The translations under genes and the position numbers were made by a program. This document shows positions 17,231 to 50,538 of a DNA stretch of 64,000 nucleotides, in pieces. The stretch spans positions 3,534,001 to 3,598,000 of the forward strand of contig NW_027362946.1 in NCBI RefSeq assembly GCF_046119375.1, read 5' to 3'. Source of the stretch: Phyllobates terribilis (taxonomy: Eukaryota). The first letter of the stretch is position 1; every line of letters begins with the position of its first letter. The notes beneath the pieces are model-generated. The model did no database searches, had not been told where the DNA came from, and was given only the letters and a program-made list of their open reading frames with translations.

Positions 17231-17405
17231 TCCACACTGTAAACCCCTCCTGACCCCACACATAAACTTCAGCTCATCCAGCACCATGACAACCAGCACA
17301 GCAGAGTCCTGCATCCACTGAGGCCCCTGATCATGTGACCCCTGACTCCTCCCCTCCTGTGACCTCATCACAGCTCCTGGGCGCACAGAGCAGCCATCTT
17401 CCTTC
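17222..17405. promoter_or_regulatory. Conserved about 180-bp module upstream of zinc-finger gene A2 (putative promoter)
   Basis: Near-identical copies at 31340-31520 and 49202-49385, each following the 30-bp array and preceding a ZNF gene. Contains YY1-like gcagccatcttcc, E-box-like catgtgac and a ctcctcccctcc box. Function is inferred. Confidence 0.5.
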
Positions 17406-17574
17406 CATTTAGGATCCTGTAGATTCAGTCGTTCTCATCATTATCTTCCATCTTCTAGAAAATTTACCTTACACCTTAGTGGATGGAGAAGGAGAAGAAG
17501 AAGATGGCGGAGAGGATATTCCACCTCACCCTAGAGATCCTCTTCCGGCTTACTGGAGAGGTGAGAGATTCTGA

Positions 17575-19929
17575 CAGGGGCGGACACAGACTGTAGTGGG
17601 CCCCTGTGCAAGAAATTTTTGGGGGCCCCCCTGCCCTTCATAAGGTAACAAAGTTATGTAAACATAACCCCCCCATGTGCAGCTCTCACCCCCCCTCACG
17701 TGTGCAGCTCTCACCCCCCCTCACGTGTGCAGCTCTCACCCCCCCTCACGTGTGCAGCTCTCACCCCCCCTCACGTGTGCAGCTCTCACCCCCCCTCACG
17801 TGTGCAGCTCTCACCCCCCCTCACGTGTGCAGCTCTCACCCCCCCTCACGTGTGCAGCTCTCACCCCCCCTCACGTGTGCAGCTCTCACCCCCCCCTCAC
17901 GTGTGCAGCTCTCACCCCCCCTCACGTGTGCAGCTCTCACCCCCCCTCACGTGTGCAGCTCTCACCCCCCCCTCATTTGTGCAGCTCTCACCCCCCCTCA
18001 CGTGTGCAGCTCTCACCCCCCCTCACGTGGGCAGCTCTCGCCCCCCCCTCACGTGGGCAGCTCTCGCCCCCCCTCACGTGGGCAGCTCTCGCCCCCCCCT
18101 CACGTGGGCAGCTCTCGCCCCCCCCTCACGTGGGCAGCTCTCGCCCCCCCCTCACGTGGGCAGCTCTCGCCCCCCCCTCACGTGGGCAGCTCTCGCCCCC
18201 CCCTCACGTGGGCAGCTCTCGCCCCCCCCTCACGTGGGCAGCTCTCGCCCCCCCCTCACGTGGGCAGCTCTCGCCCCCCCCTCACGTGGGCAGCTCTCGC
18301 CCCCCCCTCACGTGGGCAGCTCTCGCCCCCCCCTCACGTGGGCAGCTCTCGCCCCCCCCTCACGTGGGCAGCTCTCGCCCCCCCCTCACGTGGGCAGCTC
18401 TCGCCCCCCCCTCACGTGGGCAGCTCTCGCCCCCCCCTCACGTGGGCAGCTCTCGCCCCCCCCTCACGTGGGCAGCTCTCGCCCCCCCCTCACGTGGGCA
18501 GCTCTCGCCCCCCCCTCACGTGGGCAGCTCTCGCCCCCCCCTCACGTGGGCAGCTCTCGCCCCCCCCTCACGTGGGCAGCTCTCGCCCCCCCCTCACGTG
18601 GGCAGCTCTCGCCCCCCCCTCACGTGGGCAGCTCTCGCCCCCCCCTCACGTGGGCAGCTCTCGCCCCCCCCTCACGTGGGCAGCTCTCGCCCCCCCCTCA
18701 CGTGGGCAGCTCTCGCCCCCCCCTCACGTGGGCAGCTCTCGCCCCCCCCTCACGTGGGCAGCTCTCGCCCCCCCCTCACGTGGGCAGCTCTCGCCCCCCC
18801 CCTCACGTGGGCAGCTCTCGCCCCCCCCTCACGTGGGCAGCTCTCGCCCCCCCCTCACGTGGGCAGCTCTCGCCCCCCCCCTCACGTGGGCAGCTCTCGC
18901 CCCCCCCTCACGTGGGCAGCTCTCGCCCCCCCCCTCACGTGGGCAGCTCTCGCCCCCCCCCTCACGTGGGCAGCTCTCGCCCCCCCCCTCACGTGGGCAG
19001 CTCTCGCCCCCCCCCTCACGTGGGCAGCTCTCGCCCCCCCCTCACGTGGGCAGCTCTCGCCCCCCCCTCACGTGGGCAGCTCTCGCCCCCCCCCTCACGT
19101 GGGCAGCTCTCGCCCCCCCCCTCACGTGGGCAGCTCTCGCCCCCCCCCTCACGTGGGCAGCTCTCGCCCCCCCCTCACGTGGGCAGCTCTCGCCCCCCCC
19201 TCACGTGGGCAGCTCTCGCCCCCCCCCTCACGTGGGCAGCTCTCGCCCCCCCCCTCACGTGGGCAGCTCTCGCCCCCCCCTCACGTGGGCAGCTCTCGCC
19301 CCCCCCCTCACGTGGGCAGCTCTCGCCCCCCCCCTCACGTGGGCAGCTCTCGCCCCCCCCCTCACGTGGGCAGCTCTCGCCCCCCCCCTCACGTGGGCAG
19401 CTCTCGCCCCCCCCCTCACGTGGGCAGCTCTCGCCCCCCCCCTCACGTGGGCAGCTCTCGCCCCCCCCCCCACGTGGGCAGCTCTCACCCCCCCCCCCAC
19501 GTGGGCAGCTCTCATCTCCCCCCACTCCTAGTTAATTGTATTTTAAAAAAAAATAAAACTTGTTATACTTACCCCCATGCGATCCTTGCAGAATCCTGGC
19601 GCTCGTCCAAATCGCTGACACCAGGTTCTCCTGACTTCCGGCCATGTGACGGCGCCTTCACATGACCGGAAGTCAGGGGAATCATGAAGGCGCAGCAGCG
19701 CAGCGCTCATATGTCCCGGACCCGGCGCTTAGCATGGGGCTGGGGGCCCCATGAGAGAGATGCACAAGAGGGGGGCCCCCCAACGGGGCTCCGAGGGGGC
19801 CCCTACCAGCTGGGCCCCATACTGGAGTCAGGGCAGTCATGCCCTGATGGCGGCCCTGCTGGAGGGGCCCCCTCTCCCTCGGGGCCCCCGTTCAATGAAC
19901 GGGCTGCACGGGCAGTAGTTCCGCCCCTG
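17575..19929. mobile_element. Non-autonomous hAT element in intron 1 of A2 (absent from copy B)
   Basis: TIRs caggggcgga / tccgcccctg. Perfect 8-bp TSD gattctga at 17567-17574 and 19930-19937. The empty site in copy B is at about 49556-49563. Confidence 0.93.
17672..19520. repeat. 25-27-bp minisatellite, about 70 units (C7-9-tcacgtgggcagctctcg)
   Basis: Tandem units read directly; they differ mainly in C-run length. Confidence 0.96.
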
Positions 19930-27674: not shown

Positions 27675-28828
27675 GTGACCTGATTGTCCCAACCTGGATT
27701 CTTCAAAACGTTTTTGAGGGTTAGGTGATGGTCAATTGAGCAGATCTGAATTCTTCCAGCTAGGACTGTGGTCCCTTAAGCTGGCGTCCTGTAGATTCTC
27801 TGTCTGGGGAACAGAGGCAGATTCCCCCCCCCCCACCCCCCTTCAATAGGTCACAACTATTCTTCAGGCCATCATCCACAGGTCCGGGGGAAGGTGAGAT
27901 GTGGTCAACTCTCATTGTTTGAGTATTTAATCAAACTGCATAGTTTGTCCTTCCCTGCTAGCAAGTAAACAAGTTGCCTGGACTGATACAATGGTAGCAA
28001 CATATTAGCAAAAATCAATTGTTCAATGACCTGCGTTCCTGTCATCCACGGATAGCAAGACAATATGCTGAAACAAACGTCAACTCAAGAGTCAACGTTA
28101 AGGCTCATATAACAATGGCCTATGTTTCTTGACCCACCAAAGAAGCACGTCTGGCTTAATCAAGAACAAATGCTGTGTCGTCACATTGGGGAATATGAGA
28201 AAATCACTGATGTTTAAAAGTTGTACAAGAGCTCAGGAGCGAAAGTGCGATAGGGACTTATCCGGTATGAAATAAAATATTTTTAACAGGGTTCTGCTAA
28301 CCTGGTATGGCTGTGTTCACAAAACAGTTATCAAGACGTAGGTAATCAGCTGCTGCAGATCCACAGGTTGTCAGACCAAACCAAAGTAGATGGAGGAAAA
28401 ACATGGATGGTCCACGCTGCTGGTAGATTGATGAAAGGATCAGGATACACAGAACTGTATTAATTGTCGTTTTATTATCGACACCTTTCGAAGTTGACAC
28501 TTCTTAAGGATATAACCACATGTAGACACATATAACAGTCAGACAGCTTTATAAGAGGGGCATTCAAATAATGGCGCCAAAGAGGCCCATGATGTGTCAA
28601 AGTTCACCTTTTACCGTTATGACAACTCTGAAAAACCAAACGCTGATGAAAATCTGATCCAAAACACTGAGGAAAATAAGACTGGATTGTTAAGTATGAG
28701 AAAAATCACTGACGTCTGAATGAGGCCCTACATTGAAAAACCTGTGAGCTTTTACAAAGCCTACCTGAGATAAAATGGAGGATGCTCGGTTTTCATCGGG
28801 TACAATGGAAGATGTGCTCTATTTCAGT

Positions 28829-30222
28829 GTACCTCAGGTAAAATGGAGGAGGCTCTCCAGGCGTACCTCAGGTAAAATGGAGGAGGCTCTCCCGGTGTAC
28901 CTCAGGTAAAATGGAGGAGGCTCTCCAGGTGTACCTCAGGTAAAATGGAAGAGGCTCTCCAGGTGTACCTCAGGTAAAATGGAAGAGGCTCTCCAGGTGT
29001 ACCTCAGGTAAAATGGAAGAGGCTCTCCAGGTGTACCTCAGGTAAAATGGAAGAGGCTCTCCCGGTGTACCTCAGGTAAAATGGAAGAGGCTCTCCCGGT
29101 GTACCTCAGGTAAAATAGAAGAGGCTCTCCCGGTGTACCTCAGGTAAAATGTCGGAGGCTCTCCAGGCGTACCTCAGGTAAAATGTCGGAGGCTCTCCAG
29201 GCGTACCTCAGGTAAAATGTCGGAGGCTCTCCAGGCGTACCTCAGGTAAAATGTCGGAGGCTCTCCAGGCGTACCTCAGGTAAAATGTCGGAGGCTCTCC
29301 AGGCGTACCTCAGGTAAAATGGAGGAGGCTCTCCCGGTGTACCTCAGGTAAAATGGAGGAGGCTCTCCAGGTGTACCTCAGGTAAAATGGAAGAGGCTCT
29401 CCAGGTGTACCTCAGGTAAAATGGAAGAGGCTCTCCAGGTGTACCTCAGGTAAAATGGAAGAGGCTCTCCAGGTGTACCTCAGGTAAAATGGAAGAGGCT
29501 CTCCCGGTGTACCTCAGGTAAAATGGAAGAGGCTCTCCCGGTGTACCTCAGGTAAAATAGAAGAGGCTCTCCCGGTGTACCTCAGGTAAAATGTCGGAGG
29601 CTCTCCAGGCGTACCTCAGGTAAAATGTCGGAGGCTCTCCAGGCGTACCTCAGGTAAAATGTCGGAGGCTCTCCAGGCGTACCTCAGGTAAAATGTCGGA
29701 GGCTCTCCAGGCGTACCTCAGGTAAAATGTCGGAGGCTCTCCAGGCGTACCTCAGGTAAAATGTCGGAGGCTCTCCAGGCGTACCTCAGGTAAAATGTCG
29801 GAGGCTCTCCAGGCGTACCTCAGGTAAAATGTCGGAGGCTCTCCAGGCGTACCTCAGGTAAAATGTCGGAGGCTCTCCCGGCGTACCTCAGGTAAAATGG
29901 AAGAGGCTCTCCCGGCGTACCTCAGGTAAAATGGAAGAGGCTCTCCCGGCGTACCTCAGGTAAAATGGAAGAGGCTCTCCCGGCGTACCTCAGGTAAAAT
30001 GGAAGAGGCTCTCCCGGTGTACCTCAGGTAAAATGGAGGAGGCTCTCCAGGTATATCTCAGGTAAAATGGAAGAGGCCCTCCCGGTGTACCTCAGGTAAA
30101 ATGGAGGAGGCTCTCCAGGTGTACCTCAAATAAAATGGAGTAGGCGCTCCCTGTGTACCTCAGATAAAATGGAGGAGGCTCTCTTAGTGTACCTTAGATA
30201 TAATGGAGGAGGCTCTCCTGGT
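28829..30222. repeat. 34-bp minisatellite, about 40 units (gtacctcaggtaaaatggaagaggctctccaggt)
   Basis: Tandem units read directly. Confidence 0.96.
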
Positions 30223-30357
30223 GTAAAACCAGCTCACCATAAAAGCCAGTAAAGTAAATAATATAATTAAGTGGAGGAGGCTCTCTTTCTTTCTTTGAGC
30301 ACCTCAAAGAAAATCTCTCTGTTTCCAATTGAAAGAAAGAAGGAGGCGACGTAACTT

Positions 30358-31345
30358 AGCTCCGCTCCGTCCGCCTCGTACACGCGCGGCTCGGCTCCGT
30401 CCGCCTCGTACACGCGCGGCTCGGCTCCGTCCGCCTCGTACACGCGCGGCTCGGCTCCGTCCGCCTCGTACACGCGCGGCTCGGCTCCGTCCGCCTCGTA
30501 CACGCGCGGCTCGGCTCCGTCCGCCTCGTACACGCGCGGCTCGGCTCCGTCCGCCTCGTACACGCGCGGCTCGGCTCCGTCCGCCTCGTACACGCGCGGC
30601 TCGGCTCCGTCCGCCTCGTACACGCGCGGCTCGGCTCCGTCCGCCTCGTACACGCGCGGCTCGGCTCCGTCCGCCTCGTACACGCGCGGCTCGGCTCCGT
30701 CCGCCTCGTACACGCGCGGCTCGGCTCCGTCCGCCTCGTACACGCGCGGCTCGGCTCCGTCCGCCTCGTACACGCGCGGCTCGGCTCCGTCCGCCTCGTA
30801 CACGCGCGGCTGCGCTCCGCACGCCTCGTACACGCGCGGCTGCGCTCCGCACGCCTCGTACACGCGCGGCTGCGCTCCGCACGCCTCGTACACGCGCGGC
30901 TGCGCTCCGCACGCCTCGTACACGCGCGGCTGCGCTCCGCACGCCTCGTACACGCGCGGCTGCGCTCCGCACGCCTCGTACACGCGCGGCTGCGCTCCGC
31001 ACGCCTCGTACACGCGCGGCTGCGCTCCGCACGCCTCGTACACGCGCGGCTCCGCTCCGCACGCCTCGTACACGCGCGGCTCCGCTCCGCACGCCTCGTA
31101 CACGCGCGGCTCCGCTCCGCACGCCTCGTACACGCGCGGCTCCGCTCCGCACGCCTCGTACACGCGCGGCTCCGCTCCGCACGCCTCGTACACGCGCGGC
31201 TCCGCTCCGCACGCCTCGTACACGCGCGGCTCCGCACGCCTCGTACACGCGCGGCTCCGCTCCGCACGCCTCGTACACGCGCGGCTCCGCTCCGCACGCC
31301 TCGTACACGCGCGGCTCCGCTCCGTACGCCTCGTACACGCGGCTC
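30358..31345. repeat. 30-bp CpG-rich minisatellite, about 33 units, same family as 15550-17230
   Basis: Units tcggctccgtccgcctcgtacacgcgcggc and variants, arranged in homogeneous blocks. Confidence 0.97.
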
Positions 31346-31520
31346 TGCTACATCCACACTGTAAACCCCTCCTGACCCCACACATAAACTTCAGCTCATC
31401 CAGCACCATGACAACCAGCACAGCAGAGTCCTGCATCCACTGAGGCCCCTGATCATGTGACCCCTGACTCCTCCCCTCCTGTGACCTCATCACAGCTCCT
31501 GTGCGCACAGAACAGCCATA
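31340..31520. promoter_or_regulatory. Conserved upstream module, copy preceding gene B1
   Basis: Near-identical to 17222-17395 up to cagccat; separated from B1 by the hAT insertion at 31571-36147. Confidence 0.45.
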
Positions 31521-33292: not shown

Positions 33293-34589
33293 TACATAGC
33301 CAGCAGCTTTTGTTTTGGCCAAAAGATTTTTAAAACCACCACCACGATAAGTTAGACTCTTCTGGCCGGGCCCTACTCTATTCTAACCTATTAAAATTTT
33401 CTTAAAGTACCCAATACTCTTTTTAGGTATATTTTTATTTATTTTTCTTTAAGGGAATGTGTCATACACATTTTTTAAAATGACCAATAATACCACATAC
33501 AAGGATCAAATACCACCACACCATGACCGGACCACATATTACCACCACATAGTGACCGAATAATACCACATACAAGGAATACCGCTGCACCATGACCAGA
33601 CCACATATTACCACCACATAGTGACCGAATAATACCACACAGAAGGGACAAAAAATGCCACACCATGACCAGACCACATGTTACCACCACATTGTCACCT
33701 TATTACAATACTGATCATTAATAAAAAACCATAATACTAATATTACCATAAGTGCCATTATACACCGGAGCTCTGTACATGGTATACAGTGTATAATGTA
33801 AGTGTACAGGTAATATAGTGATCATCAGTGACATTATACACTGGAGCTCTGTATATAGTGTCAGTGTACAGGTAATACAGTGATCACCAGTGACATTATA
33901 CACAGGAGCCCTGTACATAGTATATAGTGTCATTGTACATGTAATACACTGACTCACCAGTGACGTCTCTAGTTGAAGTCCTTCATCTTCACTTTTCTCC
34001 TTCATCCAGCACAGACCACCATCACTTCTTCCAGCCAGGACTTGTCTTTGAATAAAATAACACAGTTATGTAGAGCATATTCCCCAACTTCTACATTACA
34101 CAGCTGAATACAGATGTGCACCCACCATTAATATATAATTAGTCATTATGCAACCCACCATTCCAAATATAATTGTAATCCATCCCTGCGCCCCAAATAA
34201 CTGTAAATAGCCACTTTCCCCACCTAATAAATATGTAAATTAATTAGAGCCTGTACTCTTTCCCAGAATTTATTACCAGTCACACTCCTGCATCCGCAAT
34301 GCCCCCCACTCTGTACCTCCTGCTCCCCCGATTCATTATATTTACATGACCCTCTGCCCCAATTCATTATTTCCTGCTCTCCCCACCCCCACCCTCTATT
34401 CATCATTTACTCTCCCTCATCCCCCATTCACCATTTGCTTTCCCCACCCCACTCCCAATTCATCATGTGCTTTCCCCACTCCCACTTTTCAATCCACCAT
34501 TTGCTCTCCCCACCCCTAATTCACCGTTCGCTCTTCCCACCCACCACTCCCAATCCACCATGCGCTCATCCTCCCCCCACTCTCAATCC

Positions 34590-35780
34590 TCCATGTGCAG
34601 CTCACCCCTCCACTCCCAATTCCCCATGTGCAGCTCACACCCCCCACTGCCAATTCCCCATGTGCAGTTCATTCTCCTCACCACTCCCAACATTCCCCCC
34701 ACTTCCAACTCATCATTATGTGCAGCTCATCCACCCCCCACTGGCAATTCCCCATCACGTGCAGCTCATCCTCCCCCACTGCCAATTCCCCATCACGTGC
34801 AGCTCATCCTCCCCCTACTGCCAATTCCCCATGTGCAGTTCATCCTCCTCACCACACCCAACATTCCCCCCACTCCCAACTCATCATTATGTGCAGCTCA
34901 TCCACCCCCCACTGGCAATTCCCCATCACGTGCAGCTCATCCTCCCCCACTGCCAATTCCCCATCACGTGCAGCTCATCCTCCCCCCACTGCTAATTCCC
35001 CATGTGCAGCTAATCCTCCCCCACTGCCAACTCCCCATGTGCAGCTCATCCTCCCCCACTGATAATTCCCCATGTGCAGCTCATCCTCCCCCACTGCCAA
35101 TTTCCCATGTGCAGCTAATTCCCCATGTGCAGCTCATCCTCCCCCACTGCCAATTCCCCATATGCAGCTCATCCTCCTCCCACTCCAAATTCCCCATCAT
35201 GTGCAGCTCATCCTCTCCCCACTCCCAATTCCCCATCACGTGCAGCTCATCCTCTCCCCACTGATAATTCCCCATGTGCAGCTCATCCTCCCCCACTGCC
35301 AATTCCCCATGTGCAGCTCATCCTCCTCCCACTCCAAATTCCACATCATGTGCAGCTCATCCTCTCCCCACTCCCAATTCCCCATCACGTGCAGCTCATC
35401 ATCCCCCACTGATAATTCCCGATGTGCAGCTCATCCTCCCCCACTGCCAATTCCCCATGTGCAGCTCATCCTCCTCCCACTCCAAATTCCACATCATGTG
35501 CAGCTCATCCTCTCCCCCCTCCCAATTTCCCATCACGTGCAGCTCATCCTTCCCCACTGCCAATTCCCCATGTGCAGTTCATCCTCCTCCCACTCCAAAT
35601 TCCCCATGATGTGCAGCTCATCCTCCCCCAACTGCTAATTCCCATGTGCAGCTCATCCTCCCCCACTGTCAATTCCCCATGTGCAGCTCATCCTCCTCCC
35701 ACTCCAAATTCCCCACCATGTGCAGCTCATCCTCCCTCCACTCCCAATTCCCCATCATGTGCAGCTCATCCTCCCCCCAC
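34590..35780. repeat. 35/38-bp minisatellite, expanded relative to copy A
   Basis: Same units as 620-1505, about 300 bp longer. Confidence 0.94.
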
Positions 35781-36930
35781 TCCATTTAATTTTTTAAAAA
35801 AAAATTAAATTGTCATACTTACCCCACATACGATCCCTGCAGCATCCTGGCGCTCCTGTTGCGATGAGGAGGTGCACGCCGCCACCGGGTGCTCCTGACT
35901 CCTGAAGTATGAAGGAGCTGCTGCACCGGCGCAGCTTCAGTAAGGAACTCGGTGCCAATATGTGCGCCATCTAAGGCGGTGTGCGCCCCAGTGCTCGGCA
36001 CTTTATTGCAGCATGGAGTGCCGTGCATGGAGCGCCGTGAGCAGACGCACAAGAGGGGGGCCCTGACTAGACCCGGCCCCTCTCTGTACTGCTGCTCACG
36101 GGGCCCCAAACAGCAGTAAGGGCAGTGATGCCCTGATGGCGGCCCTGTCTGCAGGTGGAGGTATGTGGAGATTCCCCATTATTGTCTCTCAGAATTTGCC
36201 GTTATTCACACTATGCGTCTATTTTGTGTCTGTTTTTTTTGCATGGTGAAATAAATCATCCCTCTGATTGACCGCTGGCTGCTCGCAGGGAGGCAGCAGG
36301 GAGGCAGCTGACAATCAGTGTGATGTCGTCAGTCACGTCCCATCAAGAAAGCAGAGCCAAAGAGAAGCCGCTGCTCCGTCTACGTGACTCATTAGAAGCC
36401 GCAGAGTCACTGGCAGGAGCAGTCCGTGACCGCTCTGTTCCCGCAGACATTGAGGCAGGGCAGGCAGGCAGTTAGGAACTATCTGCCTTTTACTTCTTCT
36501 GCCCATAGTTATAAAAATAATATAGTCCTGGATAAACTCTTTAACACACAGCTATCATCCGTGGACAGGCTGTTCTTTTTCGTGGACCTATTCACTTGAA
36601 TAAGCAAGTTTAGGGCAGGACAAGAAAATATCCCTAAATAATCTACTATGTCCGTGTTCACACCACGAGTGCAGCGTTCAGGCCAAACCTCCTCCGGTCC
36701 TCAAAGCGAAGCTCATTAACGGCCGCCATAAAAATCCACTTCTTCTTCCGGCATCATCCAGGATCAGATCCACAGATTACTGCTTTATACCGGAATCAGT
36801 GATTGTATTATTACATAGAATTATTGATGACGTTACATCTTCTCATCTTCTTCTCATTCAGGTCTCTACAATATCGGATCCTCTCAGTGAAGATCTTCTA
36901 TATAAGAGAAGTTTCCTGTCAAAGGTTGAT

Positions 36931-39900
36931 ATGGACAGAGACAAGATGGCGGAGAGGATATTCCACCTCACCCTAGAGATCCTCTTCCGGCTTACTGGAG
37001 AGGTGAGAGATACTGATGACGTCACATTACATCATTCTTATCTATGGGAATAACAGATGGACAGAACTGGAGAGGTGAGGACTCTGGAAATGTCTGGAGG
37101 GAGATTTATTAATGTGTCTCTCCATAACCAGGATTACATAGTAGTGAAGAAGACCTCTAGTGAGCGGTGTCAGAACCCTGTGTCTGAGGGATGGGGAAGA
37201 CCCCTGAGCCCAATCACGGGGCCTCCACCTCACCCCCTGATACATGAGGACATCAAAGACCAGAAGATCCTAGAACTCACCTACAAGATGATTGAGCTGC
37301 TGACTGGAGAGGTGACACTGCTGGGAATGCTGGGACATTATACAGTAACGCTATGGAGGGATCGGGGGGATGACGGTATCATTGTATGTGTCAGGTTCCT
37401 ATAAGATGTCAGGATGTCGCTGTCTATTTCTCCATGGAGGAGTGGGAATATTTAGAAGAACACAAAGATCTGTACAAGGACTTCATGATGGAGGTTCCCC
37501 AGTCCCTCACATCACCAGGTAATAGGACTAATTACACACGGCCTATAATTATCTGTATGTAAAGAATGAATTCAGTCCCTGTATGTGTTTCCTCCAGATC
37601 TATCCAGTAAGAGGACAACACCAGAGAGATGTCCCCGTCCTCTTCTTCCACAGGACTGTAAACAAGAAGACCCCAATGTTCCTCAGGATCATCAGGTAGA
37701 TGGAGAGAAGGTGTCATGAGATCTCCCCTATGATGTGTAGACAGCTGTGAGGGTCTTGTGCTCAGTCTTGTTTTATCCACCAGTATTATATGTTTTATAC
37801 TTGTGTAATGAGAGCGGTGGAGATGGCAGGATTAGAGCTGATCATAGATGGGACTTCTCCATCTGTCTGTGACTTTTACAATATTTGTTTCAGGGTGAAG
37901 ATCTGACCCATATTAATACTACAGAGACATATGTGAGGGGTGATGAGCGGTGTAAAGAGGAGATTCCTACATATGACCACCCAGGTGAGTAGTGACCACT
38001 AAATGCAGAGAAGTCACAGATCCTGTGGTCATTATATTATGAGTTTGATCACACAAGTAATTGACGTGCATTTTACTTGCAGATAGATTTGATGCATAAC
38101 AAAAAAAGCTTTTTTTTGCACCTTTTTTGATTAACGCATTTTGGCAGCAAAGTTTCATTGGTTAAATGGGATTTTATTTGCTGCAGAAAGGCGCCATGTC
38201 TCCAATTGTAATGTAGTTGTGAGTTGCCAGATTACAGCTGAATGTCAAGAAGAGAGCCGGGCCACACACAGAAGTCAGGCAGGTGAACATCTAAGCTGGA
38301 GAAGCCAAGGTCAATATCTAGCAGCAGTACACGTCCCGGAAGGACAGTCAAGTGAGAAGCCAAACCATTCTGCGGTCAACAAGAAGTATGTAGGCAGATC
38401 AGAAAAGGGTTTAGAAGTAGGGTCAGGTAATAATCTGGTCAAGGTCCAGTTTTGATTCTCCATTGAACATTTCACTAGAAAAGATCAGTGACAATACACA
38501 CAAAGGAAATAAACGTGTCTATAACAAAACAGGTGTAATTGCAATAATGTTCTAGGAGAAATACTTCATTTTCTGGAACAATTTTAAGGGCGTCAACTAT
38601 TTCAACCATGACTGTGTACAGAGAAATGTGAGACAATATAGAGATTAAAAATACAATTTATTAGATCGCAGTTGAAAACACATAAAAATACAAAAAGCCA
38701 TTTAAGAGGGATAAACGTAATCACAAAAAACAATGGAATGAGGCATCTGGATGAGTCCTGGATAAGTCCTAAGCATACAGCCTTGAAGGGGTATTCTCAC
38801 CTCCAAAATCCTATCCCAAAATATAGTAGGTAGGATAATAATAATAGAAAATGCCTCCAATTAGAAATGTACTCCGAGTGTCCTGGGATCACCACGCTGA
38901 CGTACCGACCCCCATCTTCTCTGATTCTACTGGGATCTGTGGTTCTGGCTCTGGGATGCGCTCCGGCACCTGTAGCCACAAACATAGCAAGGACCAGAGT
39001 GGCCTCCCAGGTGTCGGACTATCCGTATGCCACCAGGAGCATATTGGCTAAGAACGCCATCGATGGGAACAAAGACACCGACTTCAGTAGTGGCTTCTGC
39101 ACCCACACCAACCTGGAGAAGGATCCCTGGTGGAAGCTGGACCTGGGCCAGAGCTACAAGATATCCAGCATCGCCATAACTAACAGGATGGACTGTGGTC
39201 TGGAGCGACTGATGGGGGCCGAGGTCCGAATCGGGAACTCCCCTGACAATAACATTCCAGTGTGCGGCACAGTCACAAATGTGGTCTCTGCCACCATGTC
39301 CTTTTGCTGTAAGGGGATGGAGGGTCGCTACGTCAGCGTGGTGATCCCAGGACACTCGGAGTACCTGTCGATGTGTGAGGTCGAGGTTTATTCAGACTCC
39401 AATTAGAAATGTGGTATAGTTCTCCTGATTCTTTGTCACTTATCCCATGTGCAGAGCATTGCAGTAGCTTAGGTATCCATAGTTATGACCACTAGCAACT
39501 AACTTGCAATGCCCTGAACATGGGGTAAGCGACATAGCGAATCAAAAGAACTATACTACATTTGTAATTGGAGATATTTGCTAATCTTATTTTTATTATA
39601 CCTACTACATATTGGTATAGTTTCTCAGAGATGGGAATACCCCATCTTCATTGTTTTTATGGCGTGTATTTTTCTCTGTTGCTTTAGATTGTAATGTAAT
39701 AAAGCTTATTTTTAATCCTCCCTTTATTGCCTCAAAAGTTTCTGCGTATATGTATTATGTTCGTCGATGGTACGTTAGGGGTTCAGTACCATGGGATTTG
39801 TGCACAGGTGGCTCACCACTGTCTTAGGTCATAGTTTCATTATACTTTGATTTGTATAGAATTATGTATAGAGAAATGTTATAAAATATAAGGCATTGAT

Positions 39901-41144
39901 ATTAAAAAATAATAAAATCAGATTTATTCTTGGCAGATGACTGTGGTGTCAAACCAGATACCTATGAAAAGCGTGCCATTATTCCAGCTATACCTCCAGC
40001 CCTTCAGAGCAGAAATCAATCATCTGAGCCTTTTCAATCTGTCATCTACTTGGATTCATCACAGACTGTTAAGCAAAATGAAAGCCAGAGAAGGGATGTC
40101 GAACATCAAATAATTCCCACAGGGAAGAAACCATTTTCCTGTTCAGAATGTGGGAAATGTTTTAAAACTAAATATAAATTGCTTTCACATCAGAGAAGTC
40201 ACACAGGAGAAAAGCCGTTTTCATGTTCAGAATGTGGGAAATGTTTCAGCGATAAGTCATATTTGCTTAAACATTACAGAAGTCATACAGGAGAGAAGCC
40301 ATATTCATGTTCAGAATGTGGGAAATGTTTTATCCAGAAACGAGATCTTCATAAACATCAAACATTTCACACAGGAGAGAAGCCATATTCATGTTCAGAA
40401 TGTGGGAAATGTTTTATCCAGAAACCAGATCTTCATAAACATCAAAGAATTCACACTGGAGAAAAGCCATATTTATGTCAAGAATGTGGGGAATGTTTTG
40501 AACATAAATCTAAATTGCTTATGCATCAAAGAAGTCACACAGGAGAAAAGCCATTTTCATGTTCAGAATGTGCGAAATGTTTCAGCAATAAGTCAGATTT
40601 GCTTAAACATTACAGAAGTCATACAGGAGAGAAGCCATATTCATGTTCAGAATGTGGGAAATGTTTTCTCCAGAAATCAGATCTTCATAAACATCAAAGA
40701 ATTCACACAGGAGAGAAGCCATATTCATGTTCAGAATGTGGGAAATGTTTTATCCGGAAACCAGATCTTCAAAGACATCAAAGAATTCACACTGGAGAAA
40801 AGCCATATTTATGTCCAGAATGTGGTAAATGTTTTATCCAGAAACCAGATCTTCAAAAACATCAAAGAATTCACACTGGAGAAAAGCCATATTTATGTCC
40901 AGAATGTGGGAAATGTTTTACCCAGAAACCAGATCTTCATAAACATTACAGAAGTCATACAGGAGAGAAGCCATATTCATGTTCAGAATGTGGGAAATGT
41001 TTTATCCGGAAACCAGATCTTCAAAAACATCAAAGAATTAACACTGGAGAAAAGTCATATTCATGTCCAGAATGTGGGAAATGTTTCACCCAGGGTTCAT
41101 GTTTAATACAGCATATACAGTTACACAAAATAAAAAGGGATTAA
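36931..41144 (+). CDS. Intact KRAB-like C2H2 zinc-finger protein B1 (oocyte/gastrula XlCOF/XlCGF-like), 590 aa, 12 fingers. Exons 36931-37002, 37132-37311, 37395-37518, 37598-37695, 37894-37984, 39937-41144
   Basis: Exon lengths 72+180+124+98+91+1208 = 1773 nt, with consistent phases, GT-AG introns and no internal stop. Exon 3 is KRAB-A-like. Finger 11 is degenerate (last His to Asn). Confidence 0.92.
38787..39644. mobile_element. MITE carrying the lectin insertion, copy B
   Basis: Same arms as 4504-5818; 16-bp direct repeats at 38855-38870 and 39397-39412. Confidence 0.75.
38867..39406 (+). CDS. Uninterrupted 179-aa F-type lectin (fucolectin-like) ORF nested in the last intron of B1
   Basis: Complete domain: NIAR..ASQVS, AIDGN, H-x26-R-x-D-x4-R (HTNL...NRMDCGLER), [15 protein letters not shown], plus a hydrophobic [12 protein letters not shown] stretch. 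Homology is clear; expression is unknown. Confidence 0.7.
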   Translation: MYSECPGITTLTYRPPSSLILLGSVVLALGCAPAPVATNIARTRVASQVSDYPYATRSILAKNAIDGNKDTDFSSGFCTHTNLEKDPWWKLDLGQSYKISSIAITNRMDCGLERLMGAEVRIGNSPDNNIPVCGTVTNVVSATMSFCCKGMEGRYVSVVIPGHSEYLSMCEVEVYSDSN

Positions 41145-41673
41145 TAGAAGGACTTACTAGGCCGATCGCAGAGACCATTCAGTTTAGCTGGAGGGAAGCA
41201 CTCAAACGAACCGTTATGGAACAGGACCCCCGCTTACACAAATATGTATAACCCGGCATGAGTATAGATCAATATTCGGCCTGATCTTTTATGCCGACGG
41301 GGGCGCTGCCCACACACTCCCCTGTGATGACCTCACGTGGGCTGGTCTCCGCCCTTCTTGGTTTTATTCAATCTCTAATTTTCTGCGATAACTCCTCACT
41401 GGTTGATCGCAGAAGTTAGCAAGTGATGCCATCTTTTTTATTGCAAATTTACCTGTGATGGATCAACCCCGTACTCCAAGATTTTTCCACATGGGGGTTG
41501 TCGTAGCACCTATGCAGCTAATGGGACATAATGTTACAAAGTGGGGTGAATATTGTGGATCACATATTGTTGGACATTTTGTGATGTGACCAAAGCACTC
41601 CTGGCCCCCACCTTCCTGTGCTCACTTAGCAGGGGCAAACAGACAATGTGCTGATTAATGGGTTGTTGCCTAA

Positions 41674-42297
41674 GGGCCCCGTCACACTAAGCGATGCAGC
41701 AGCGATCCCGACAACGATACGACCTGTCAGGGATCGTTGCTGCATCGCTAATACATCGCTGGTGAGCTGTCAAACAGGCAGGCTCACCAGCGATCAGGGG
41801 AGCAGCGATATCGTGGAAAGAATCGTTCCACGATGTCCTGCTCCCGTTACCAGCCTGCTGCAAGCAGGAGCAGGCTGGTAACTATGGTAAACATCGGGTT
41901 ACTAAGTGCGCGTGTGCCCCTAGTAACCCGCTGTTTACCATGGATACCACTCTGCTACGGTGCGCGGGAGCCTCCGCGCACCGTAGCAGAGTGGTATCCA
42001 TGGTAAACAGCGGGTTACTAAGTGCGCGCGTGCCCCTAGTAACCCGATGTTTACCATAGTTACCAGCCAGATCGTTGGTCCCGCTGGTCACACACAGCGA
42101 TGTGTGCTGGCCAGCGGGAGGCCAACGACCAAAAAATGGTCCAGGACACTTTGCAACGATCAGCGACCTCACAGCAGGGGCCTGATCGTTGCAAAGTGTC
42201 ACACACAGCGACATCGCTGGTGAGGTCGCTGGTGAGTCACCAAAACCGTGACTCAGCAGCGATATCGCTAGCGATATCGCTATGTGAGACGGGGGCT
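41674..42297. mobile_element. PIF/Harbinger-type MITE (absent from copy A)
   Basis: TIRs gggccccgtcacac / gtgagacgggggct. Flanks taa / tca at an empty-site cc-TAA-ctgct (7501-7510 in copy A). Confidence 0.8.
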
Positions 42298-42709
42298 TCA
42301 CTGCTGTCTGGGAGCCTACTGTGGGTATTATCTGGTGAGAACAATGGGTGCTAAAAATAGCCTGTGTGATTCTCTTTAAAACCTGCTTGTAAGAATAAAA
42401 GTTTTAGTCCATCTTGGAGACACACTGCGATAGTCATATTTTATATATCCCAGTGTAAGAAAAGCTTTTCCATGTCAGGGGCAGGCAGAAGAAGATTGGA
42501 CATCTGCGGATGGGGTAACTAGCTCCCGTCACACTACCTTTACTTAGAGACCACACATTACATGACTGCTGTCCGTTATTTTCATTTTCAGAAAGGCTCT
42601 AACTTGCTTCTTTAAGAGTGGTCTTGGCCAGTTTTGGATTGCATCTACTTTACTGATCTGGGGTTTGATCTCGCCTCTACCTACTACATATCCTAGTTAT
42701 TCGGCCTCT

Positions 42710-45700
42710 TTATTTCCCATGGCAAAATGTTTTCAGATTTATAGAAAACCCTGCCTTCCTGAGAGGATCAAACACCGACTGGACCTTTTGCAGGTGACAT
42801 CTCCAATCTGGGCTGAAGATTACAATATATAAAGTATGATGCAGTGTAATTCTTATGGATTGCGAGGATCCAGTCCATGGCACTCTGGAAGGTGGCCAGG
42901 GCTCCCTTTTGACAAAACAGCATCCGGACATATTGGAAACATCCGTTGGGCATAGAGAAGGCAGTCTTCTCCTTGGCTTCTTGTGACATGGGGATTTGCC
43001 AATATTTCTTAGTTAAATCCAAGGTGGTTATGTGGCGCCCCTGAGAGTTCAGTCGCGACAGGGGTACTGCACTTCATGGAACGAGGTGTGGTATCTCCTC
43101 TCCGAGGTAAGGATGGAGCACCACACAGGGCCCCACCACACATCCAACACTACACACTCCCATTCTGAAGGGGGTTTAGAGCACAATGTGCTACCCCAGT
43201 CCTGAATGGAGGAGTAAGGGGGGGACCAAAAGTAGGGGGAACCTTGTAGTGAGTAGGGTGGAGGAAGCACTTTACGGTTACACTAATACATCCATATAAA
43301 TATGGATGCCATCTTTAATACCGGGTTTTTTGTCGCAGTTCCCTGGAGGTGACAGTTAGTACAAGCTGCATCTGCCTCAGGAGGCTGTGATTCCCGGTCT
43401 CAGGCCTTGAGATTGGGGGCTGGGGCAGAGTTGAGTTACAGCTGGCTGTGTCCTATGTCTTAGTCCACACCAGAAGGCCTAGGAGGGGAGCAGAGGAGAA
43501 GAGCTCCACAGGCGAAAGGATCTCAGGGGATGTGGACGGAGCAGAGTCGCCACCTGCTACCCTTATTCTGGCCCCGCCAGAGAGACTCCTGCCGCAAGAG
43601 GGGGTACCGGTCCCCGATTATCTGACTTTGTACTCCAGGTCTCTGTCAGAAAAGTCCGGAGGCTGAAGTGGTTCCCAGGGGGAATATGGATGGAGCGGAG
43701 TCGCCACCTGTATCCCCTTAATCTGCGTCTATCCAGAGGGACCCCAGCCTTACGCCACGTTTACACACCAGTCACCAATAAGGGACCTAGGCGGTCCGGG
43801 GGCTACAAGCCACCTTCAGCGGACATTGCGGTACCCGTACGGGACTTAGTAGGGGCACGAGGCGGTTCTAGTACAGCAAGTGAGAGGAACACACTGGTGG
43901 AGGGGTTTTGTCTGGTGCATCCGCGCTACCCGGAGTGAGCTGAACCCCATCCTGGTGGCCGCAGCGCGCCGTGAGGAACAAAGAGAAGCTTTGTGGCTGA
44001 AAACAAGTCTACCGTGAGTAAAACCTGGATGACTTCATACACCGCCTCTTCTCTCTCATTTCTGCGCGGCACCGCACCCACCATTCCTCTGCACTGCACT
44101 TCTTCTACTCTGCCCTGAGGCCTGGCTCCACCTGCGGGGAGCTATTCCATCCCAAGCTGCTAGAACACCGGCCTCAGAGGACTGGCGCAGCGCTGGTGGT
44201 CCTCAGCAGAAACCACAGGTGGCGTAGCCGACAAATAACCACTCATCCACTACCCCATATTTTTAATGTGTGCGCCCTGGCCACGGACTGGGCCAAGGCC
44301 ATCACTGCATCCCCCTCTACCACCGGCCCGCAGTCCGAGTACACCTTTCCCACGGAGGGCTAACGCTACCTGAGTAGTAGTGGGTCACAAAGTTATATAC
44401 TTTGCCAGCCCACGTCTCGCGATCAGGTCATCTACACACGGCATCTGATATGCGTTGAACTTGGACTTCATTCAGCTTCCTATAATCGTTACAGAACCTC
44501 CATTCGCCATCAGGTTTTGGAACCAGGACAATAGGGCTACACCACCCTCTCTGATTCCTCAAATACTCAGAGATTCCTTGGAGAATAGCTCTCGCCAGGC
44601 CTCAGGAATTAGATAGGGCTTCAAGTTCACCCGCACATGGGATTCCATCAGAACCTCATGTTCTATGACCTTTGTACAAAATAGCAAATCTAAGAACAGG
44701 TCCCTGTTCTGCTGCAACAACTCCCGCACTGCTATTTTTGAGCCTTCAACTGCATCTTTGCTATTATGACTCTTTCAACATCTGCTTCAGGCTTGTCCAG
44801 AAAACACGAAGTTTCAACTGGCTCCCTATCTTGCCACATATGTACACTTGGTACAGTTTTAGTCTTCTAGGTTATTATTATTAATTAATATAGCGCCATT
44901 AATTCCATGGCGCTTTACATGTGAAAAAGGGGTATACATAGCAGACAAGAAGTACAATAGTTTAAACAAAAACAAGTCACCGACTGGCACAGGAGGCGAG
45001 AGGACCCTGCCCGTGAGGGCTCACAGTGTAGAAGGGGGGTGAGGATACCGTAGGTGAGGGTACAGCTGGTCATGCAGTGAGGGTTACTGCAGTTTGTAGG
45101 CTTATCGGAAGAGGTCGGTCTTCAGGTTCCTTTTGAAGGTTTCCACAGTAGGCGAGAGTCTGACGTGTTGGAGTAGAGAGTTCCAGAGTAGGGGGGATGC
45201 ATGGGAGAAATCTTGTATGCAATTGTGGGAAGAGGAGAAAGGAGCAGAGTAGAGAAGGTGGTCCTGTGAGGATCGGAGGTTGCATGCAAGTAGGTACCGG
45301 GAGACTAGGTCATAGATATATGGAGGAGACAGGCTATGGATGGTTTTGTATGCCAAGGTTAGGGTATTGAACTTTAGTCTCTGGGCAATGGGGAGCCAGT
45401 GCAGGGATTGGCAGCGGGAAGAGACAGGAGAATATCGGGGGGACAGGTGCATTAGTTGGGCAGCAGAGTTTAGGATAGATTGCAGGGGTGCGAGAGTGTT
45501 AGAAGAGAGACCACAGAGCAGGAGGTTGCAGTAGTCGAGGAGAGAGATGATGAGGGCACGCACTAGTGTTTTTGCAGATTCATGGTTGAGGAATGTGCGG
45601 ATCCGGGAAATATTTTTGAATTGGAGTCGGCATGAAGTGGAAAGGCCTTGGATATGAGGTGACATCCAGGCCACTAGAACTTCCGCACAACCACTTATCC

Positions 45701-47150
45701 ACTTTTATCCACATCCAAATGGTCAAGACATGTAAATGGACCATGTCCATCATCCTTCGTCTACATGGTCAGGGTACCAACAATTGCTCCACTATTTCCT
45801 CTCTGACCTTAATAACGCTGTACAATATCTCCCCACTCAACATAAAATAGGGAAACCTGGTGTCAGCCCGTGGCTCTTGCGCTATACTGTTTAGGACAGC
45901 ATCCTCGTGAAAGCAATTGACGTCAACTTTCTTTCCAGGGATCAGCTGGAGAGGAAATGTGTACCTCACTAGGGTCAACAAACTTTCTAAGACTAGCAGT
46001 CCAGTCACTTGCCGACAATTCCCCATTACAGGACAAGCTTGTGGCCCCTTATTGCGTGGAAAGATCGCACTGCAAACTGGATACACATAGTATGAACAGT
46101 GGCAACCCAGGCTACAGTCCATCTGCTTGGAAGTCAGGGGACAATGGGGTGCTATATGGCCTGGGCCGTGATATTTCCAGCATATATTGCCAGCTGGAAC
46201 CTTTGGTATAACCTCCCCTGAGCCTTTTGATCTTGGACGACCCACCCCTTTTTGGGGGTCCCCAAGGAACCATCGACCACGTGATATCTTTCGAACAGTC
46301 TGACCAGGTCATCTGTATTCCGGGGATCCCCCTGGGCAACCCAAGTCTGTATTGGCCTCGGAAAGGAGTGCACAAACCGGTACATTACCACTCGCAATAC
46401 CATCTGCACAGGGGTAGAGGTCTCTGCCTGCAACCATTTTTGAATGTGGTTCAGCAAATCAAACATTTGGTAGGGAGGGGGTTTGTCACAGTGATATGCC
46501 AAGCGGTGGACACGTTGTACCCTGACAGTCATTGTCACTCCTAAGCGCATCTTTTAAGGCTAAGTCAGAGTAGGCCTTCTGGAGCTCCCCCGTTAAGTAT
46601 GGCATCAGCACATTGCCCTGGTGAGAGTTTCTCCCTCTCGTCGAATCTTTCAAAAATGGCCTCTGTGTCGTCACCCTTGGTCATTTTTTGCAGGGCTCTC
46701 CTTACTGCCTTCTGGATGGAGACATCATCAGCTGACCTTGGAGTCGAATCTACCACCATGCCACGAACCTCTGTTGCATAAGCAGCTTATTTGTCTTCTG
46801 TTGCGCCAGCTGTTGTCGGTACTGCTGCTACAGCTGGGCTTGTACCAGGTGTTTCACTAGGTTCTCCATGCTATCTGATGTTATTTGCTGGCTTATGGCC
46901 GCCTTCGTCCAGGGCATGCAGTACCTCTGTAGCAGTCACACGTGTTCCCTGGGAACTCTGCCCGTATTTCTAACACCCATTGTGGGAATGCTACTCACTT
47001 GGGTGCGTGGTGAGGTAACACGGGAACTGTTTCCATTTATATGTCCTTGCTGGGTTATTGGTTCTTCATAAACCACATCACAAGCAAAGGAAAATAAACG
47101 GCATTCAATGGAGGCAAAACAAAGTAAACAGTTCTAACAAGGGCACTTTA
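42710..47150 (-). mobile_element. Gmr1-like element, copy B, with nested solo LTR (43031-44391) and L2 (44872-45660)
   Basis: Collinear with 7915-13751, but lacks about 1.1 kb (A 10864-11988) and about 350 bp (A about 12230-12577). Confidence 0.85.
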
Positions 47151-47159
47151 GAGACAGTC

Positions 47160-48783
47160 TAGGGGTCTCAAACACGCGGCCCGATGCGGCCCCTCCGGCT
47201 GCTTCTTGCGGCCCGCAGGCACATAGACCCCATAATGATCGCGGCTCTCTCCAGCAGCCGCCGATATCAGTGCTGTAGTACAGTGTATTGCGGCGCAGAG
47301 ACCGTCTCTCTGCACAGCAATATCAGTGCCAGCCACCGGCCTGACCTCTGCGTCCCAGCGCGGCGGCGTATGACATCACTGCCATGTACAGATGTCAGCT
47401 GCTGGCCTCTGATAGGTTGGCGGCTGGCACTGGTATTGCTGTGCAGAGAGCCGGTCTCTGCGCGGCAATACACTGCAATACAGTGCTGATATCGGCGGCT
47501 GCTGGAGAAAGCCGCGATCGTTACGGGGTCTGTGCCTGCGGGCCACAGGTGCAGAAAGGACGCCGAGGGAACGGAGGACAGGTGAGAATATATATATTTT
47601 TTTTTCTCTGTCATGTGAAATACAGCACAGGGGACCTGTGCTCAGTATATGGAGGGGGGCACCGTGTGCAGTATGGGGGGACGGGGACCCTGAGCGCAGT
47701 ATGGGGGGACGAGGACCCTGAGCGCAGTATGGGGGGACGGGGACCATGAGCGCAGTATGTGGGGGGACCCTGAGTGCAGTATGGGGGGACGGGGACCATG
47801 AGCGCTCTATGGCGGGGGACGGGGACCCTGAGCGCAGTATGGGGGGGACTGGGATCCTGAGCGCTGTATGGGGTGGGCTGGGACCCTGAGCGCTGTATGG
47901 GGGGAGGGGGACCCTGAGTGCAATATGGGGGGACGGGGACCCTGTGCGCAGTATGGGGGGGGGGGGCGGCCCTGTGCACAGTATGGGGGGGACACCTGGA
48001 TGGGGGACATGTCTGCAACATGGGGACCTGTATGGGGGACATGTCTGCAACATAAGGACCAGGATGGGGGACCATGTCTGTAATATGGGGGACCATGTCT
48101 GCAATATGGGGTACCTGGATGGGGGATCATGTCTGCAATATGGGGGGACCTGGATGGGGGACCATGTCTGCAATATGAAGGCCATGTCTGCGATATGGGG
48201 GACCTGGATGGGAGACCATGTCTGCAATATGGGGACCATGTCTGCAATATGAAGGCCATGTCTGCAATAAGGGGGACCTGGATGGGGGACCATGTCTGCA
48301 ATATGGGGGACCATGTCGGCAATATGGGGGACCATGTCTGCAATATGGAGGACCTGGATGGAAGACCATGTCTGTTGGATGGGGGACCATGTCTGCAATA
48401 TGAAGGCCACGTCTGCAATATGGGGGACCTGGATGGGGGACCATGTCTGCAATATGGGGGACCATGTCGGCAATATGGAGGACCTGGATGGGAGACCATG
48501 TCTGCTGGATGGGGACCTGGATGGGGGACCATGTCTGCAATATGGGGGACCTGGAGGGGAGACCATGTCTGCAATATGGCGGACCTGGAGGGGAGACCAT
48601 GTCTGCAATATGGGGGACCTGGAGGGGAGACCATGTCTGCAAGATGAGGACCAGTTCAAAAGGTGTATAGAAAATAAAATGGTATCACTAAAAATGTCAC
48701 TTTGTCATGCAAATAATGCGGCCCCCCAAATTAAATGTTTTTCCATGTGCGGCTCATATGCCCAGCTGAGTTTGAGACCCCTG
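47160..48783. mobile_element. Non-autonomous hAT (Charlie-like) element, copy B
   Basis: TIRs (t)aggggtctcaaac / gtttgagacccctg. gtctag occurs at both junctions, consistent with an 8-bp TSD gtctagga and a 5-nt loss on the left. Confidence 0.78.
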
Positions 48784-49030
48784 GTCTAGGACAACCACCT
48801 CTGTGATATATACCTCCCATCAACTGTGTGTCCGAAAGCCACCTTACATCATCTTAGACCGAACAAGGAGTTAATGGCTGAAATACATACACACATGTAT
48901 ACAGCCATAGTGAGGTAAGTGAAGGTGCATAGAAACTGACAGCTTCATACACTCCCATCATCATTCATCTTAGTGACACAGAACTCGCTCTATTCAGATG
49001 GTGCAGATAGATAACTCGGGATACTCCTCT

Positions 49031-49210
49031 CCGTACACCTCGTACACACGCGGCTCCGCTCCGTACACCTCGTACACACGCGGCTCCGCTCTGTACACCT
49101 CGTACACACACGGCTCTGCTCCGTACACCTCGTACACACGCGGCTCCGCTCCGTACACCTCGTACACACGCGGCTCTGCTCCGTACACCTCGTACACACG
49201 CGGCTCTGCT
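49031..49210. repeat. 30-bp minisatellite, 6 units
   Basis: Same flanks as the 56-unit array at 15550-17230. Confidence 0.95.
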
Positions 49211-49385
49211 ACATCCACACTGTAAACCCCTCCTGACCCCACACATAAACTTCAGCTCATCCAGCACCATGACAACCAGCACAGCAGAGTCCTGCATCCA
49301 CTGAGGCCCCTGATCATGTGACCCCTGACTCCTCCCCTCCTGTGACCTCATCACAGCTCCTGTGCGCACCGAGCAGCCATCTTCC
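49202..49385. promoter_or_regulatory. Conserved upstream module preceding gene B2
   Basis: Near-identical to 17222-17405. Confidence 0.5.
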
Positions 49386-49465
49386 TTCCATTTAGGATCC
49401 TGTAGATTCAGTCGTTCTCATCATTATCTTCCATCTTCTAGAAAATTTACCTTAAACCTTAGTGG

Positions 49466-50538
49466 ATGGAGAAGGAGAAGGAGAAGAAGAAGATGGCCGA
49501 GAGGATATTCCACCTCACCCTAGAGATCCTCTTCCGGCTTACTGGAGAGGTGAGAGATTCTGATGACGTCACATTACATCATTCTTATCTATGGGAATAA
49601 CAGATGAACAGAACTGGAGAGGTGAGGACTCTGGAAATGTCTGTAGTGAGATTTATTAATGTGTCTCTCCATAACCAGGATTACATAGTAGTGAAGAAGA
49701 CCTCTAGTGAGCGCTGTCAGGTCCCTGTGTCTGAGGGATGGGGAAGACCCCTGAACCCAATCACAGAGCCTCCACCTCACCCCCTGATACATGAGGACAT
49801 CAATGAGCAGAAGATCCCAGAACTCACCTACAAGATGATTGAGCTGCTGACTGGAGAGGTAACACTGCTGTGAATGCTGGGACATTATACAGTAACGCTA
49901 TGAAGGGATCGGGGGGATGATGGTATCATTGTATGTGTCAGGTTCCTATAAGATGTCAGGATGTCGCTGTCTATTTCTCCATGGAGGAGTGGGAGTATTT
50001 AGAAGGACACAAAGATCTGTACAAGGACATCATGATGGAGGTTCCCCAGCCCCTCACATCACCAGGTAATAGACAGGACTAAATACACACGGCCTATAAT
50101 TATCTGTATGTAAAGAATGAATTCAGTCCTTGTATGTGTTTCCTCCAGATCTATCCAGTAAGAGGACAACACCAGAGAGATGTCCCCGTCCTCTTCTTCC
50201 ACAGGACTGTAAACAAGAAGACCCCAATGTTCCTCAGGATCATCAGGTAGATGGAGAGAAGGTGTCATGAGATCTCCCCTATGATGTGTAGACGGCTGTG
50301 AAGGTCTTGTGTTCAGTCTTGTTTTATCCACCAGTATTATATGTTTTATACTTGTGTAATGAGAACGGTGGAGATGGCAGGATTAGAGCTGATCATAGAT
50401 GGGACTTCTCCATCATCTGTCTGTGACTTTTACAATATTTGTTTCAGGGTGAAGATCTGACCCATATTAATACTACAGAGACATATGTGAGGGGTGATGA
50501 GTGGTGTAAAGATGAGATTCCTACATATGACTACCCAG
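49466..50538 (+). CDS. KRAB-like zinc-finger gene B2, exons 1-5 (49466-49549, 49679-49858, 49942-50065, 50149-50246, 50448-50538); finger exon not in window
   Basis: Five open, phase-consistent GT-AG exons (84, 180, 124, 98, 91 nt). Completeness cannot be judged from this window. Confidence 0.8.

Follow-up and report, generated by a model that had tools for sequence, protein, structure and literature searches.

Processed pseudogenes and other retrocopies are intronless relative to a multi-exon parent located elsewhere, are flanked by target-site duplications, and can lie in sense orientation in a host intron with start and stop codons recruited from the flanks. A related arrangement, in which an inverted and a direct segment of one messenger RNA (mRNA) lie within a single target-site duplication, is known from L1 twin priming and from complementary DNA (cDNA) that folds back on itself. 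Here we describe a 64,000-nucleotide stretch of the genome of Phyllobates terribilis (assembly of 10.6 Gb; C186:3534001-3598000, hereafter the window), in which an open reading frame (ORF) encoding an F-type lectin domain, of the kind found in fish and frogs, lies on the same strand as a KRAB zinc-finger (ZNF) gene, gene B, and within its last intron. Judged by sequence comparison, the lectin is an intronless, 3'-truncated, and poly(A)-less processed retrocopy of a four-exon fucolectin gene on chromosome 4. We conclude that the ORF is quite probably a neutral by-product of the decay of a palindromic processed pseudogene and not a working gene. The preliminary description of this locus had offered a new nested gene or a neutral accident as equal options. 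The accident is now favored, and the new gene is disfavored by premature stops, by the variability of the frame, by an upstream ATG, by a predicted RNA duplex at the start codon, and by coverage that amounts to a trace.

As a retrocopy-derived chimeric open frame in a host intron, the locus belongs to a known kind. However, it differs from the usual processed pseudogene in several respects. It has no poly(A), it is truncated at the 3' rather than the 5' end, and it began as a full inverted pair. Moreover, one duplication supplies the start codon from one of its copies and the stop codon from the other, and the start became accessible only through a subsequent deletion. The fold-back palindrome, the missing poly(A), the recruitment of both codons from one duplication, and the probable reversal of an internal stop are what sets this locus apart.

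Comparison of the window with itself identified two copies, A (1-17574) and B (33975-49563), of one long unit at 92%-98% identity, and the 179-codon frame claimed in the preliminary description was found in the ORF list for copy B (Table 1). Searching the genome with the ORF protein returned exon-by-exon matches in a cluster on chromosome C4 (797.98-798.37 Mb), and the product is 84% identical to the fucolectin-6-like protein of P. terribilis chromosome 4. The parent locus (L022) has four exons, namely a 5' untranslated region (5'UTR) exon, a signal-peptide exon, and two domain exons, all with canonical GT-AG borders. The three introns are absent from the window copy, in which the exons are joined seamlessly. 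The match to the parent breaks off at 39400, within exon 4 and right at the duplication, with no 3' poly(A) tract, while the parent frame continues for about 10 codons beyond this point and ends in a conserved Cys. Thus, the retrocopy is 3'-truncated and takes its stop codon from the target. The capture of an intron-containing gene was rejected as an origin, since the central 'spacer' of copy A (4958-5080) corresponds to the parent 5'UTR exon and none of the three introns is present.

The orientation of the two arms suggests how the palindrome may have formed. Read on the bottom strand, the antisense cDNA extends as far as the mRNA 5' end and gives way immediately to sense sequence that begins with the ATG, and 2-3 nt of microhomology mark the point where the structure turns (window 4940-4975). 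This arrangement suggests that the cDNA primed its own second-strand synthesis by folding back. L1 twin priming joins two different parts of an RNA and keeps the poly(A), whereas the arms of the window palindrome cover nearly the same 450-490 nt and turn at the 5'UTR; twin priming was rejected on the grounds that the two arms represent one and the same portion of the mRNA. Nothing specific was found in the literature on fucolectin retrocopies or on fold-back processed pseudogenes.

The insertion site could be reconstructed from its paralogues. A genome search with the left flank found paralogous ZNF introns without the lectin. Six of these sites contain the 16-mer once, within an unbroken palindrome resembling a miniature inverted-repeat transposable element (MITE), so the 16-bp repeat around the lectin is a true target-site duplication. 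This confirms the earlier proposal that both the ATG and the TAG derive from the duplication. The alignment of A and B likewise upholds the deletion proposed for copy B, which lacks exactly 460 bp (A 4634-5093) with the microhomology ATC at both borders. The proposed antisense origin of the N-terminus is also borne out, as the 46 nt that follow the ATG region are the reverse complement of ORF nt about 455-500. The product differs from the F-type lectins of fish and frogs at its N-terminus, where 16 unrelated residues have taken the place of the native start and of the first four residues.

Copies of the insertion fall into three families. Every forward arm in families A, B, and C is exactly 494 nt long and ends in the same site, which indicates a single insertion. 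Family C (contigs C136 and C86) retains the complete palindrome (451 + 493 nt), family A has lost 80 nt of the inverted arm and carries a 35-bp inversion in the forward arm, and family B is defined by the 460-bp deletion. Forward and inverted arms differ by 5.5%-6.7%, and the nearest parent examined differs by 9%-10%. The genome search recovered ten copies of the B form, on contigs C36, C56 (twice), C60, C85, C116, C119, C186, C200, and C391, a count that may include redundant haplotigs among near-identical contigs. Each of them is paired with an A form 31-34 kb away, which indicates that the A+B unit was amplified after the deletion. The unit itself, about 34 kb long and including KRAB-ZNF genes, occurs on at least 10 multi-megabase unplaced contigs (those of the B form, together with C86 and C136) at 97.6%-100% identity; to judge from these sequences, the contigs may represent either a large recent amplicon or partly redundant haplotigs. 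The hallmarks of the retrocopy were found in none of the annotated proteins of other species.

The history of codon 162 bears directly on how the frame came to be open. ORF nt 484 (window 39350) is T, which creates TGA, in all seven A and all four C forward arms and, among the B copies, on C85 and C200. The parent, every inverted arm, and the remaining eight B copies have G at this position. A flank-based phylogeny rooted on A places C85 beside the A clade, where it is the first of the B copies to branch off, and at six sites this copy retains the ancestral base while the rest of the B copies carry a derived one. Since a midpoint-rooted tree was distorted by the long branch of C200, the left flank of which is divergent, only the placement of C85 was used. 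The most economical account is that the TGA had a single origin on the forward arm, predating the separation of the families, survived the deletion, and was later lost in the crown of family B. Homoplasy at nt 304, 438, and 484 points to exchange among copies, and this order of events is for that reason held to be only fairly likely. The G itself may have been regained by back mutation or, equally possibly, by conversion: the inverted remnant bears the complement of the original base, within a 48-nt match of 94%, and thus provides a ready template for a short conversion. As the TGA is present in the A and C arms and in an early-branching B copy, the deletion alone was probably insufficient to open the frame. 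The earlier label of 'deletion-rescued' is therefore incomplete, as the open frame probably also required a second event in which the stop at codon 162 was lost.

Variation among the B copies resembles that of non-coding DNA. The ten copies differ at 23 ORF sites, and premature stops interrupt three of them (W89* in one and G162* in two). The copy on C36 carries R107W, which removes a binding arginine, and the copy on C85 carries I65N within AIDGN. Variable sites amount to 4.26% of the ORF, 4.05% of the left intron, 2.32% of the right intron, and 0.91% of the ZNF finger exon, which served as the positive control for constraint and is about 4 times less variable than the ORF. Because the ORF varies as much as the intron and the ZNF exon far less, no constraint on the lectin frame is demonstrable. 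All A and C forward arms carry stops. From these comparisons we concluded that selection on the frame is not demonstrable, with room left for weak or past constraint.

Translation of the ORF also appears improbable. The predicted fold of the region consists of nested duplexes (z = -14) in which the ATG lies in a 48-nt stem and the TAG in the MITE stem, and very stable stems at an initiation site block scanning. Together with an out-of-frame ATG that lies upstream in a favorable context, the position of the start codon in a predicted stem argues against translation. Expression was followed in contigs from four public runs, for which the tissue is unrecorded and none of which is recorded as RNA. 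The runs nevertheless behave like RNA, with GT..AG joints at the ZNF exon borders (37000>37130, 37309>37393, 37514>37594, and 37691>37890) and exon bins far deeper than the intron. Summed depth is 0-9 over the ORF and 10-24 over the unique upstream intron, and X2 record 23 and X3 record 29, the contigs spanning the B junction, start upstream of the ATG, in the MITE arm. The contigs of the four runs contain no sign of a dedicated ORF mRNA, and the cluster of the ORF protein contains no run-assembly members. As far as such weak evidence goes, the coverage fits passive transcription as part of the ZNF intron. The coverage amounts to a trace that is continuous with the intron and includes the junction. 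The AATAAA that had been noted downstream is present, but it carries no weight because the hexamer occurs once per approximately 1250 nt on this strand.

The two contigs that cross the junction differ from the genome in a clustered manner. Between 38798 and 38877 they show seven A>G changes (38799, 38805-38807, 38823, 38871, and 38877) and one C>A change. All of the A>G changes fall in predicted stems, and G is found at these sites in none of approximately 31 genomic copies; one contig bears the C116-specific base at 38798. These changes probably reflect adenosine-to-inosine (ADAR-type) editing of double-stranded RNA formed by the plus strand of the intronic MITE and lectin. It is conceivable that the cassette matters as RNA, whether as edited intronic double-stranded RNA, as a source, in forms A and C, of small RNAs that would target the parental fucolectins, or through an effect on ZNF splicing. 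The strength of the predicted fold and the clustered plus-strand A>G changes are in agreement with such a role. However, family B has lost most of the lectin hairpin, the arms diverge freely, and the editing of intronic inverted repeats is a common and mostly neutral result of structure. We therefore consider a role as RNA to be unlikely.

The protein predicted from the window copy is a recognizable F-type lectin. Pfam PF22633 (F5_F8_type_C_2) matches the ORF over the full profile (1-91/91, E 3e-23) and PF00754 matches with E 6e-14, while the closest solved relatives are the striped-bass lectin FBP32 (3CQO, E 6e-68) and the eel agglutinin (1K12, E 2e-27). With these lectins it shares the domain, the His/Arg/Arg triad, and AIDGN. 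The fucose-binding motif H-x26-R-x-D-x4-R, which had been described as intact together with AIDGN, is indeed represented by H80, R107, D109, and R114, and AIDGN is retained. The description does not extend to the cysteines, as the Cys-Cys pair within the x4 stretch has changed (CCPE to CGLE, giving Cys-Gly) and the protein lacks the C-terminal tail that bears a conserved Cys. Of 62 columns with at least 90% conservation among 27 frog fucolectins, the ORF carries a different residue in 8. The signal peptide keeps its hydrophobic core, which begins at residue 18, after an uncharged lead of 17 residues, and G36V adjoins the predicted cleavage site.

Several observations weigh against the neutral reading, and several speak for a young lineage-specific retrogene. 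In that case the ORF would be translated from a transcript of its own or one derived from the ZNF gene, the extended N-terminus would retain signal-peptide activity, and several amplified copies would yield a secreted, single-domain, fucose-binding lectin. The domain is complete, its fucose-binding triad is intact, and the signal peptide retains its hydrophobic core. The second domain of 3CQO likewise has no Cys-Cys pair, so the pair is not an absolute requirement for an F-type lectin and, by analogy, its loss need not abolish binding. The full frame is kept in seven of the ten B copies, and no family shows an indel in the 494 nt. The exact 179-aa product is present in RefSeq under the name 'fucolectin-like [Phyllobates terribilis]', and the annotation calls the frame protein-coding at several P. 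terribilis loci. When changes were counted against an inferred ancestor, the stem of family B showed six synonymous and five nonsynonymous changes (binomial P = 0.03 against 76% nonsynonymous sites), and the forward arms were richer in synonymous changes than the inverted arms (8 synonymous and 25 nonsynonymous). This excess could reflect past or weak constraint. Finally, runs of unrecorded type and tissue that are represented by contigs, which show neither level, strand, nor transcript ends, are weak evidence from which to argue that the ORF lacks an mRNA.

The synonymous excess has a plausible source other than selection on the ORF. The stop-bearing C forward arm shows six synonymous and six nonsynonymous changes, and the synonymous to nonsynonymous ratio of family B does not differ significantly from that of the pooled other lineages (Fisher P = 0.18). 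In the C forward arm (L011-L014; C136 and C86), a patch of four changes at ORF nt 331-336 includes two bases that match the parent and restore Cys-Cys-Pro and two that are unique to this arm, and it looks like the product of gene conversion from a parent-like paralogue. Two of the 'changes' counted in family B also match the parent state. Conversion by a functional paralogue could thus plausibly generate the excess. A dN/dS ratio against the parent (17 synonymous and 20 nonsynonymous changes) was rejected as a test, as it mixes the constrained lineage of the parent with differences among paralogues.

Beyond this, a functional retrogene would have to be reconciled with stops in three of ten copies and the loss of a binding arginine in a fourth, with an ORF as variable as its intron, and with the lack of any promoter or 5'UTR after the deletion. 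It would also have to be translated from an ATG that is preceded by an out-of-frame ATG and enclosed in a predicted 48-nt duplex, and to function despite a substitution beside the predicted cleavage site, further departures from conserved columns, and a missing C-terminal Cys, while the coverage remains a trace that is continuous with the intron. We regard such a retrogene as distinctly unlikely. Very unlikely, in our judgment, is the more elaborate proposal that the B form represents a lectin gene of very recent origin, confined to Phyllobates, that would have been built by a fold-back retrocopy, a start-recruiting deletion, a stop repaired by conversion from the 46-nt inverted remnant, and amplification with the KRAB-ZNF genes. 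Least credible is an alternative last KRAB-ZNF exon that would be spliced to the AG at 38863-38864 in the left copy of the duplication, the only upstream acceptor that gives an open in-frame join from the phase-1 exon, to produce a KRAB-lectin fusion ended by the TAG, since a third of all acceptors would match the phase by chance, the 22 nt that precede the AG form a poor pyrimidine tract (45%), no such joint is present among the joints listed (31 low-support joints lie outside the list), and a nuclear KRAB protein has no evident use for a disulfide-dependent secreted domain.

With the ORF read as a neutral by-product, the following history may be proposed. A spliced chromosome 4 fucolectin mRNA would have been reverse-transcribed, and its cDNA would have folded back at the 5'UTR to form the inverted pair. 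This pair presumably integrated into a MITE within the last intron of a KRAB-ZNF gene and produced the 16-bp target-site duplication in doing so. Segmental duplication of the intron and its cargo would then have given rise to families A, B, and C. In the ancestor of family B, the 460-bp microhomology deletion may have removed the center of the palindrome and the native ATG and, by a chance of one frame in three, brought the ATG in the left copy of the duplication into frame with the signal-peptide core. The forward arm probably carried the TGA at codon 162 already, and a later T-to-G change, by back mutation or by short conversion from the 46-nt inverted remnant, would have opened most B copies. 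The A+B unit was apparently amplified recently to at least 10 contigs. Today the cassette would be transcribed passively as part of the ZNF intron, fold into double-stranded RNA, and collect changes, including stops, at the neutral rate.

This locus documents an unusual retrocopy, with an inverted pair, no poly(A), and a truncated 3' end. It also illustrates that a chance deletion can leave behind a frame that passes for protein-coding in an annotation pipeline. The open frame probably depended on losing a stop that persists in two of the ten B copies, one of them the earliest to branch. If the ORF were functional, it would represent the fully traceable birth of a gene from a decaying palindromic retrocopy.

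The host gene was delineated by mapping two dendrobatid KRAB-ZNF proteins onto the window for exon placement, and the resulting exons confirm that the lectin ORF is nested within the ZNF gene, as had been stated earlier. The positions of all features are collected in Table 1.

Table 1. Features of the lectin insertion and its host gene, in window coordinates
Feature	Position	Strand	Remarks
Chimeric lectin ORF, copy B	38867-39406	+	179 codons; F-type lectin domain
Left copy of target-site duplication, 16 bp	38855-38870	+	Holds the ORF ATG (38867-38869)
Right copy of target-site duplication, 16 bp	39397-39412	+	Holds the stop TAG (39404-39406)
Inverted-arm remnant, 46 nt	38871-38916	+	Antisense lectin exon 4, read as codons 2-17
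Deletion junction with ATC microhomology	38914-38919	+	Break 38916/38917; from A/B alignment
Retrocopy forward arm	38917-39400	+	Signal-peptide core and lectin domain; parent exons 2-4 joined
Codon 162	39350-39352	+	GGA in window and 8/10 B copies; TGA in C85 and C200
Inverted repeat, 5' arm, 48 nt	38864-38911	+	94% complementary (partner 39322-39369); encloses the start codon
Host MITE-like palindrome, left arm	38785-38871	.	Partner 39557-39646; clustered A>G changes of the run contigs fall here
Host MITE-like palindrome, remainder 3' of the insert	39413-39646	.	
Overlapping out-of-frame ORF, 66 codons	38851-39051	+	ATG 16 nt upstream of the lectin ATG, A at -3
KRAB zinc-finger gene B, upstream exons	36925-37989	+	Last exon 37894-37989, ends in phase 1 before a GTGAGT donor
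C2H2 zinc-finger exon of gene B	39936-41144	+	
AATAAA hexamer	39698-39703	+	Chance level
Copy A of the insertion	4572-5589	+	Inverted arm, 5'UTR loop, forward arm; two stops

Summed contig depth over the 5' exons of the KRAB-ZNF gene (36900-38065) reaches approximately 1e5, with many alternative joints, and this depth suggests that the gene, a member of a very large family related to Xenopus oocyte zinc-finger proteins, is strongly expressed. Between the two ZNF units lie long minisatellite arrays at 15550-17227, 17668-19527, 28759-30225, and 30359-31349, with periods of about 30, 26, 34, and 30 bp, respectively. In copy A, the 35 bp at 5478-5512 of the forward arm are inverted in place relative to copy B and the parent, which creates one of its stops. 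Stop-truncated copies of family C are listed in RefSeq as 149-aa proteins named 'fucolectin-1-like' or 'pentraxin fusion protein-like'. In the parental cluster, one gene (L024, C4:798360000-798369000) apparently encodes a signal peptide and three tandem F-type lectin domains, each of which is split over two exons.

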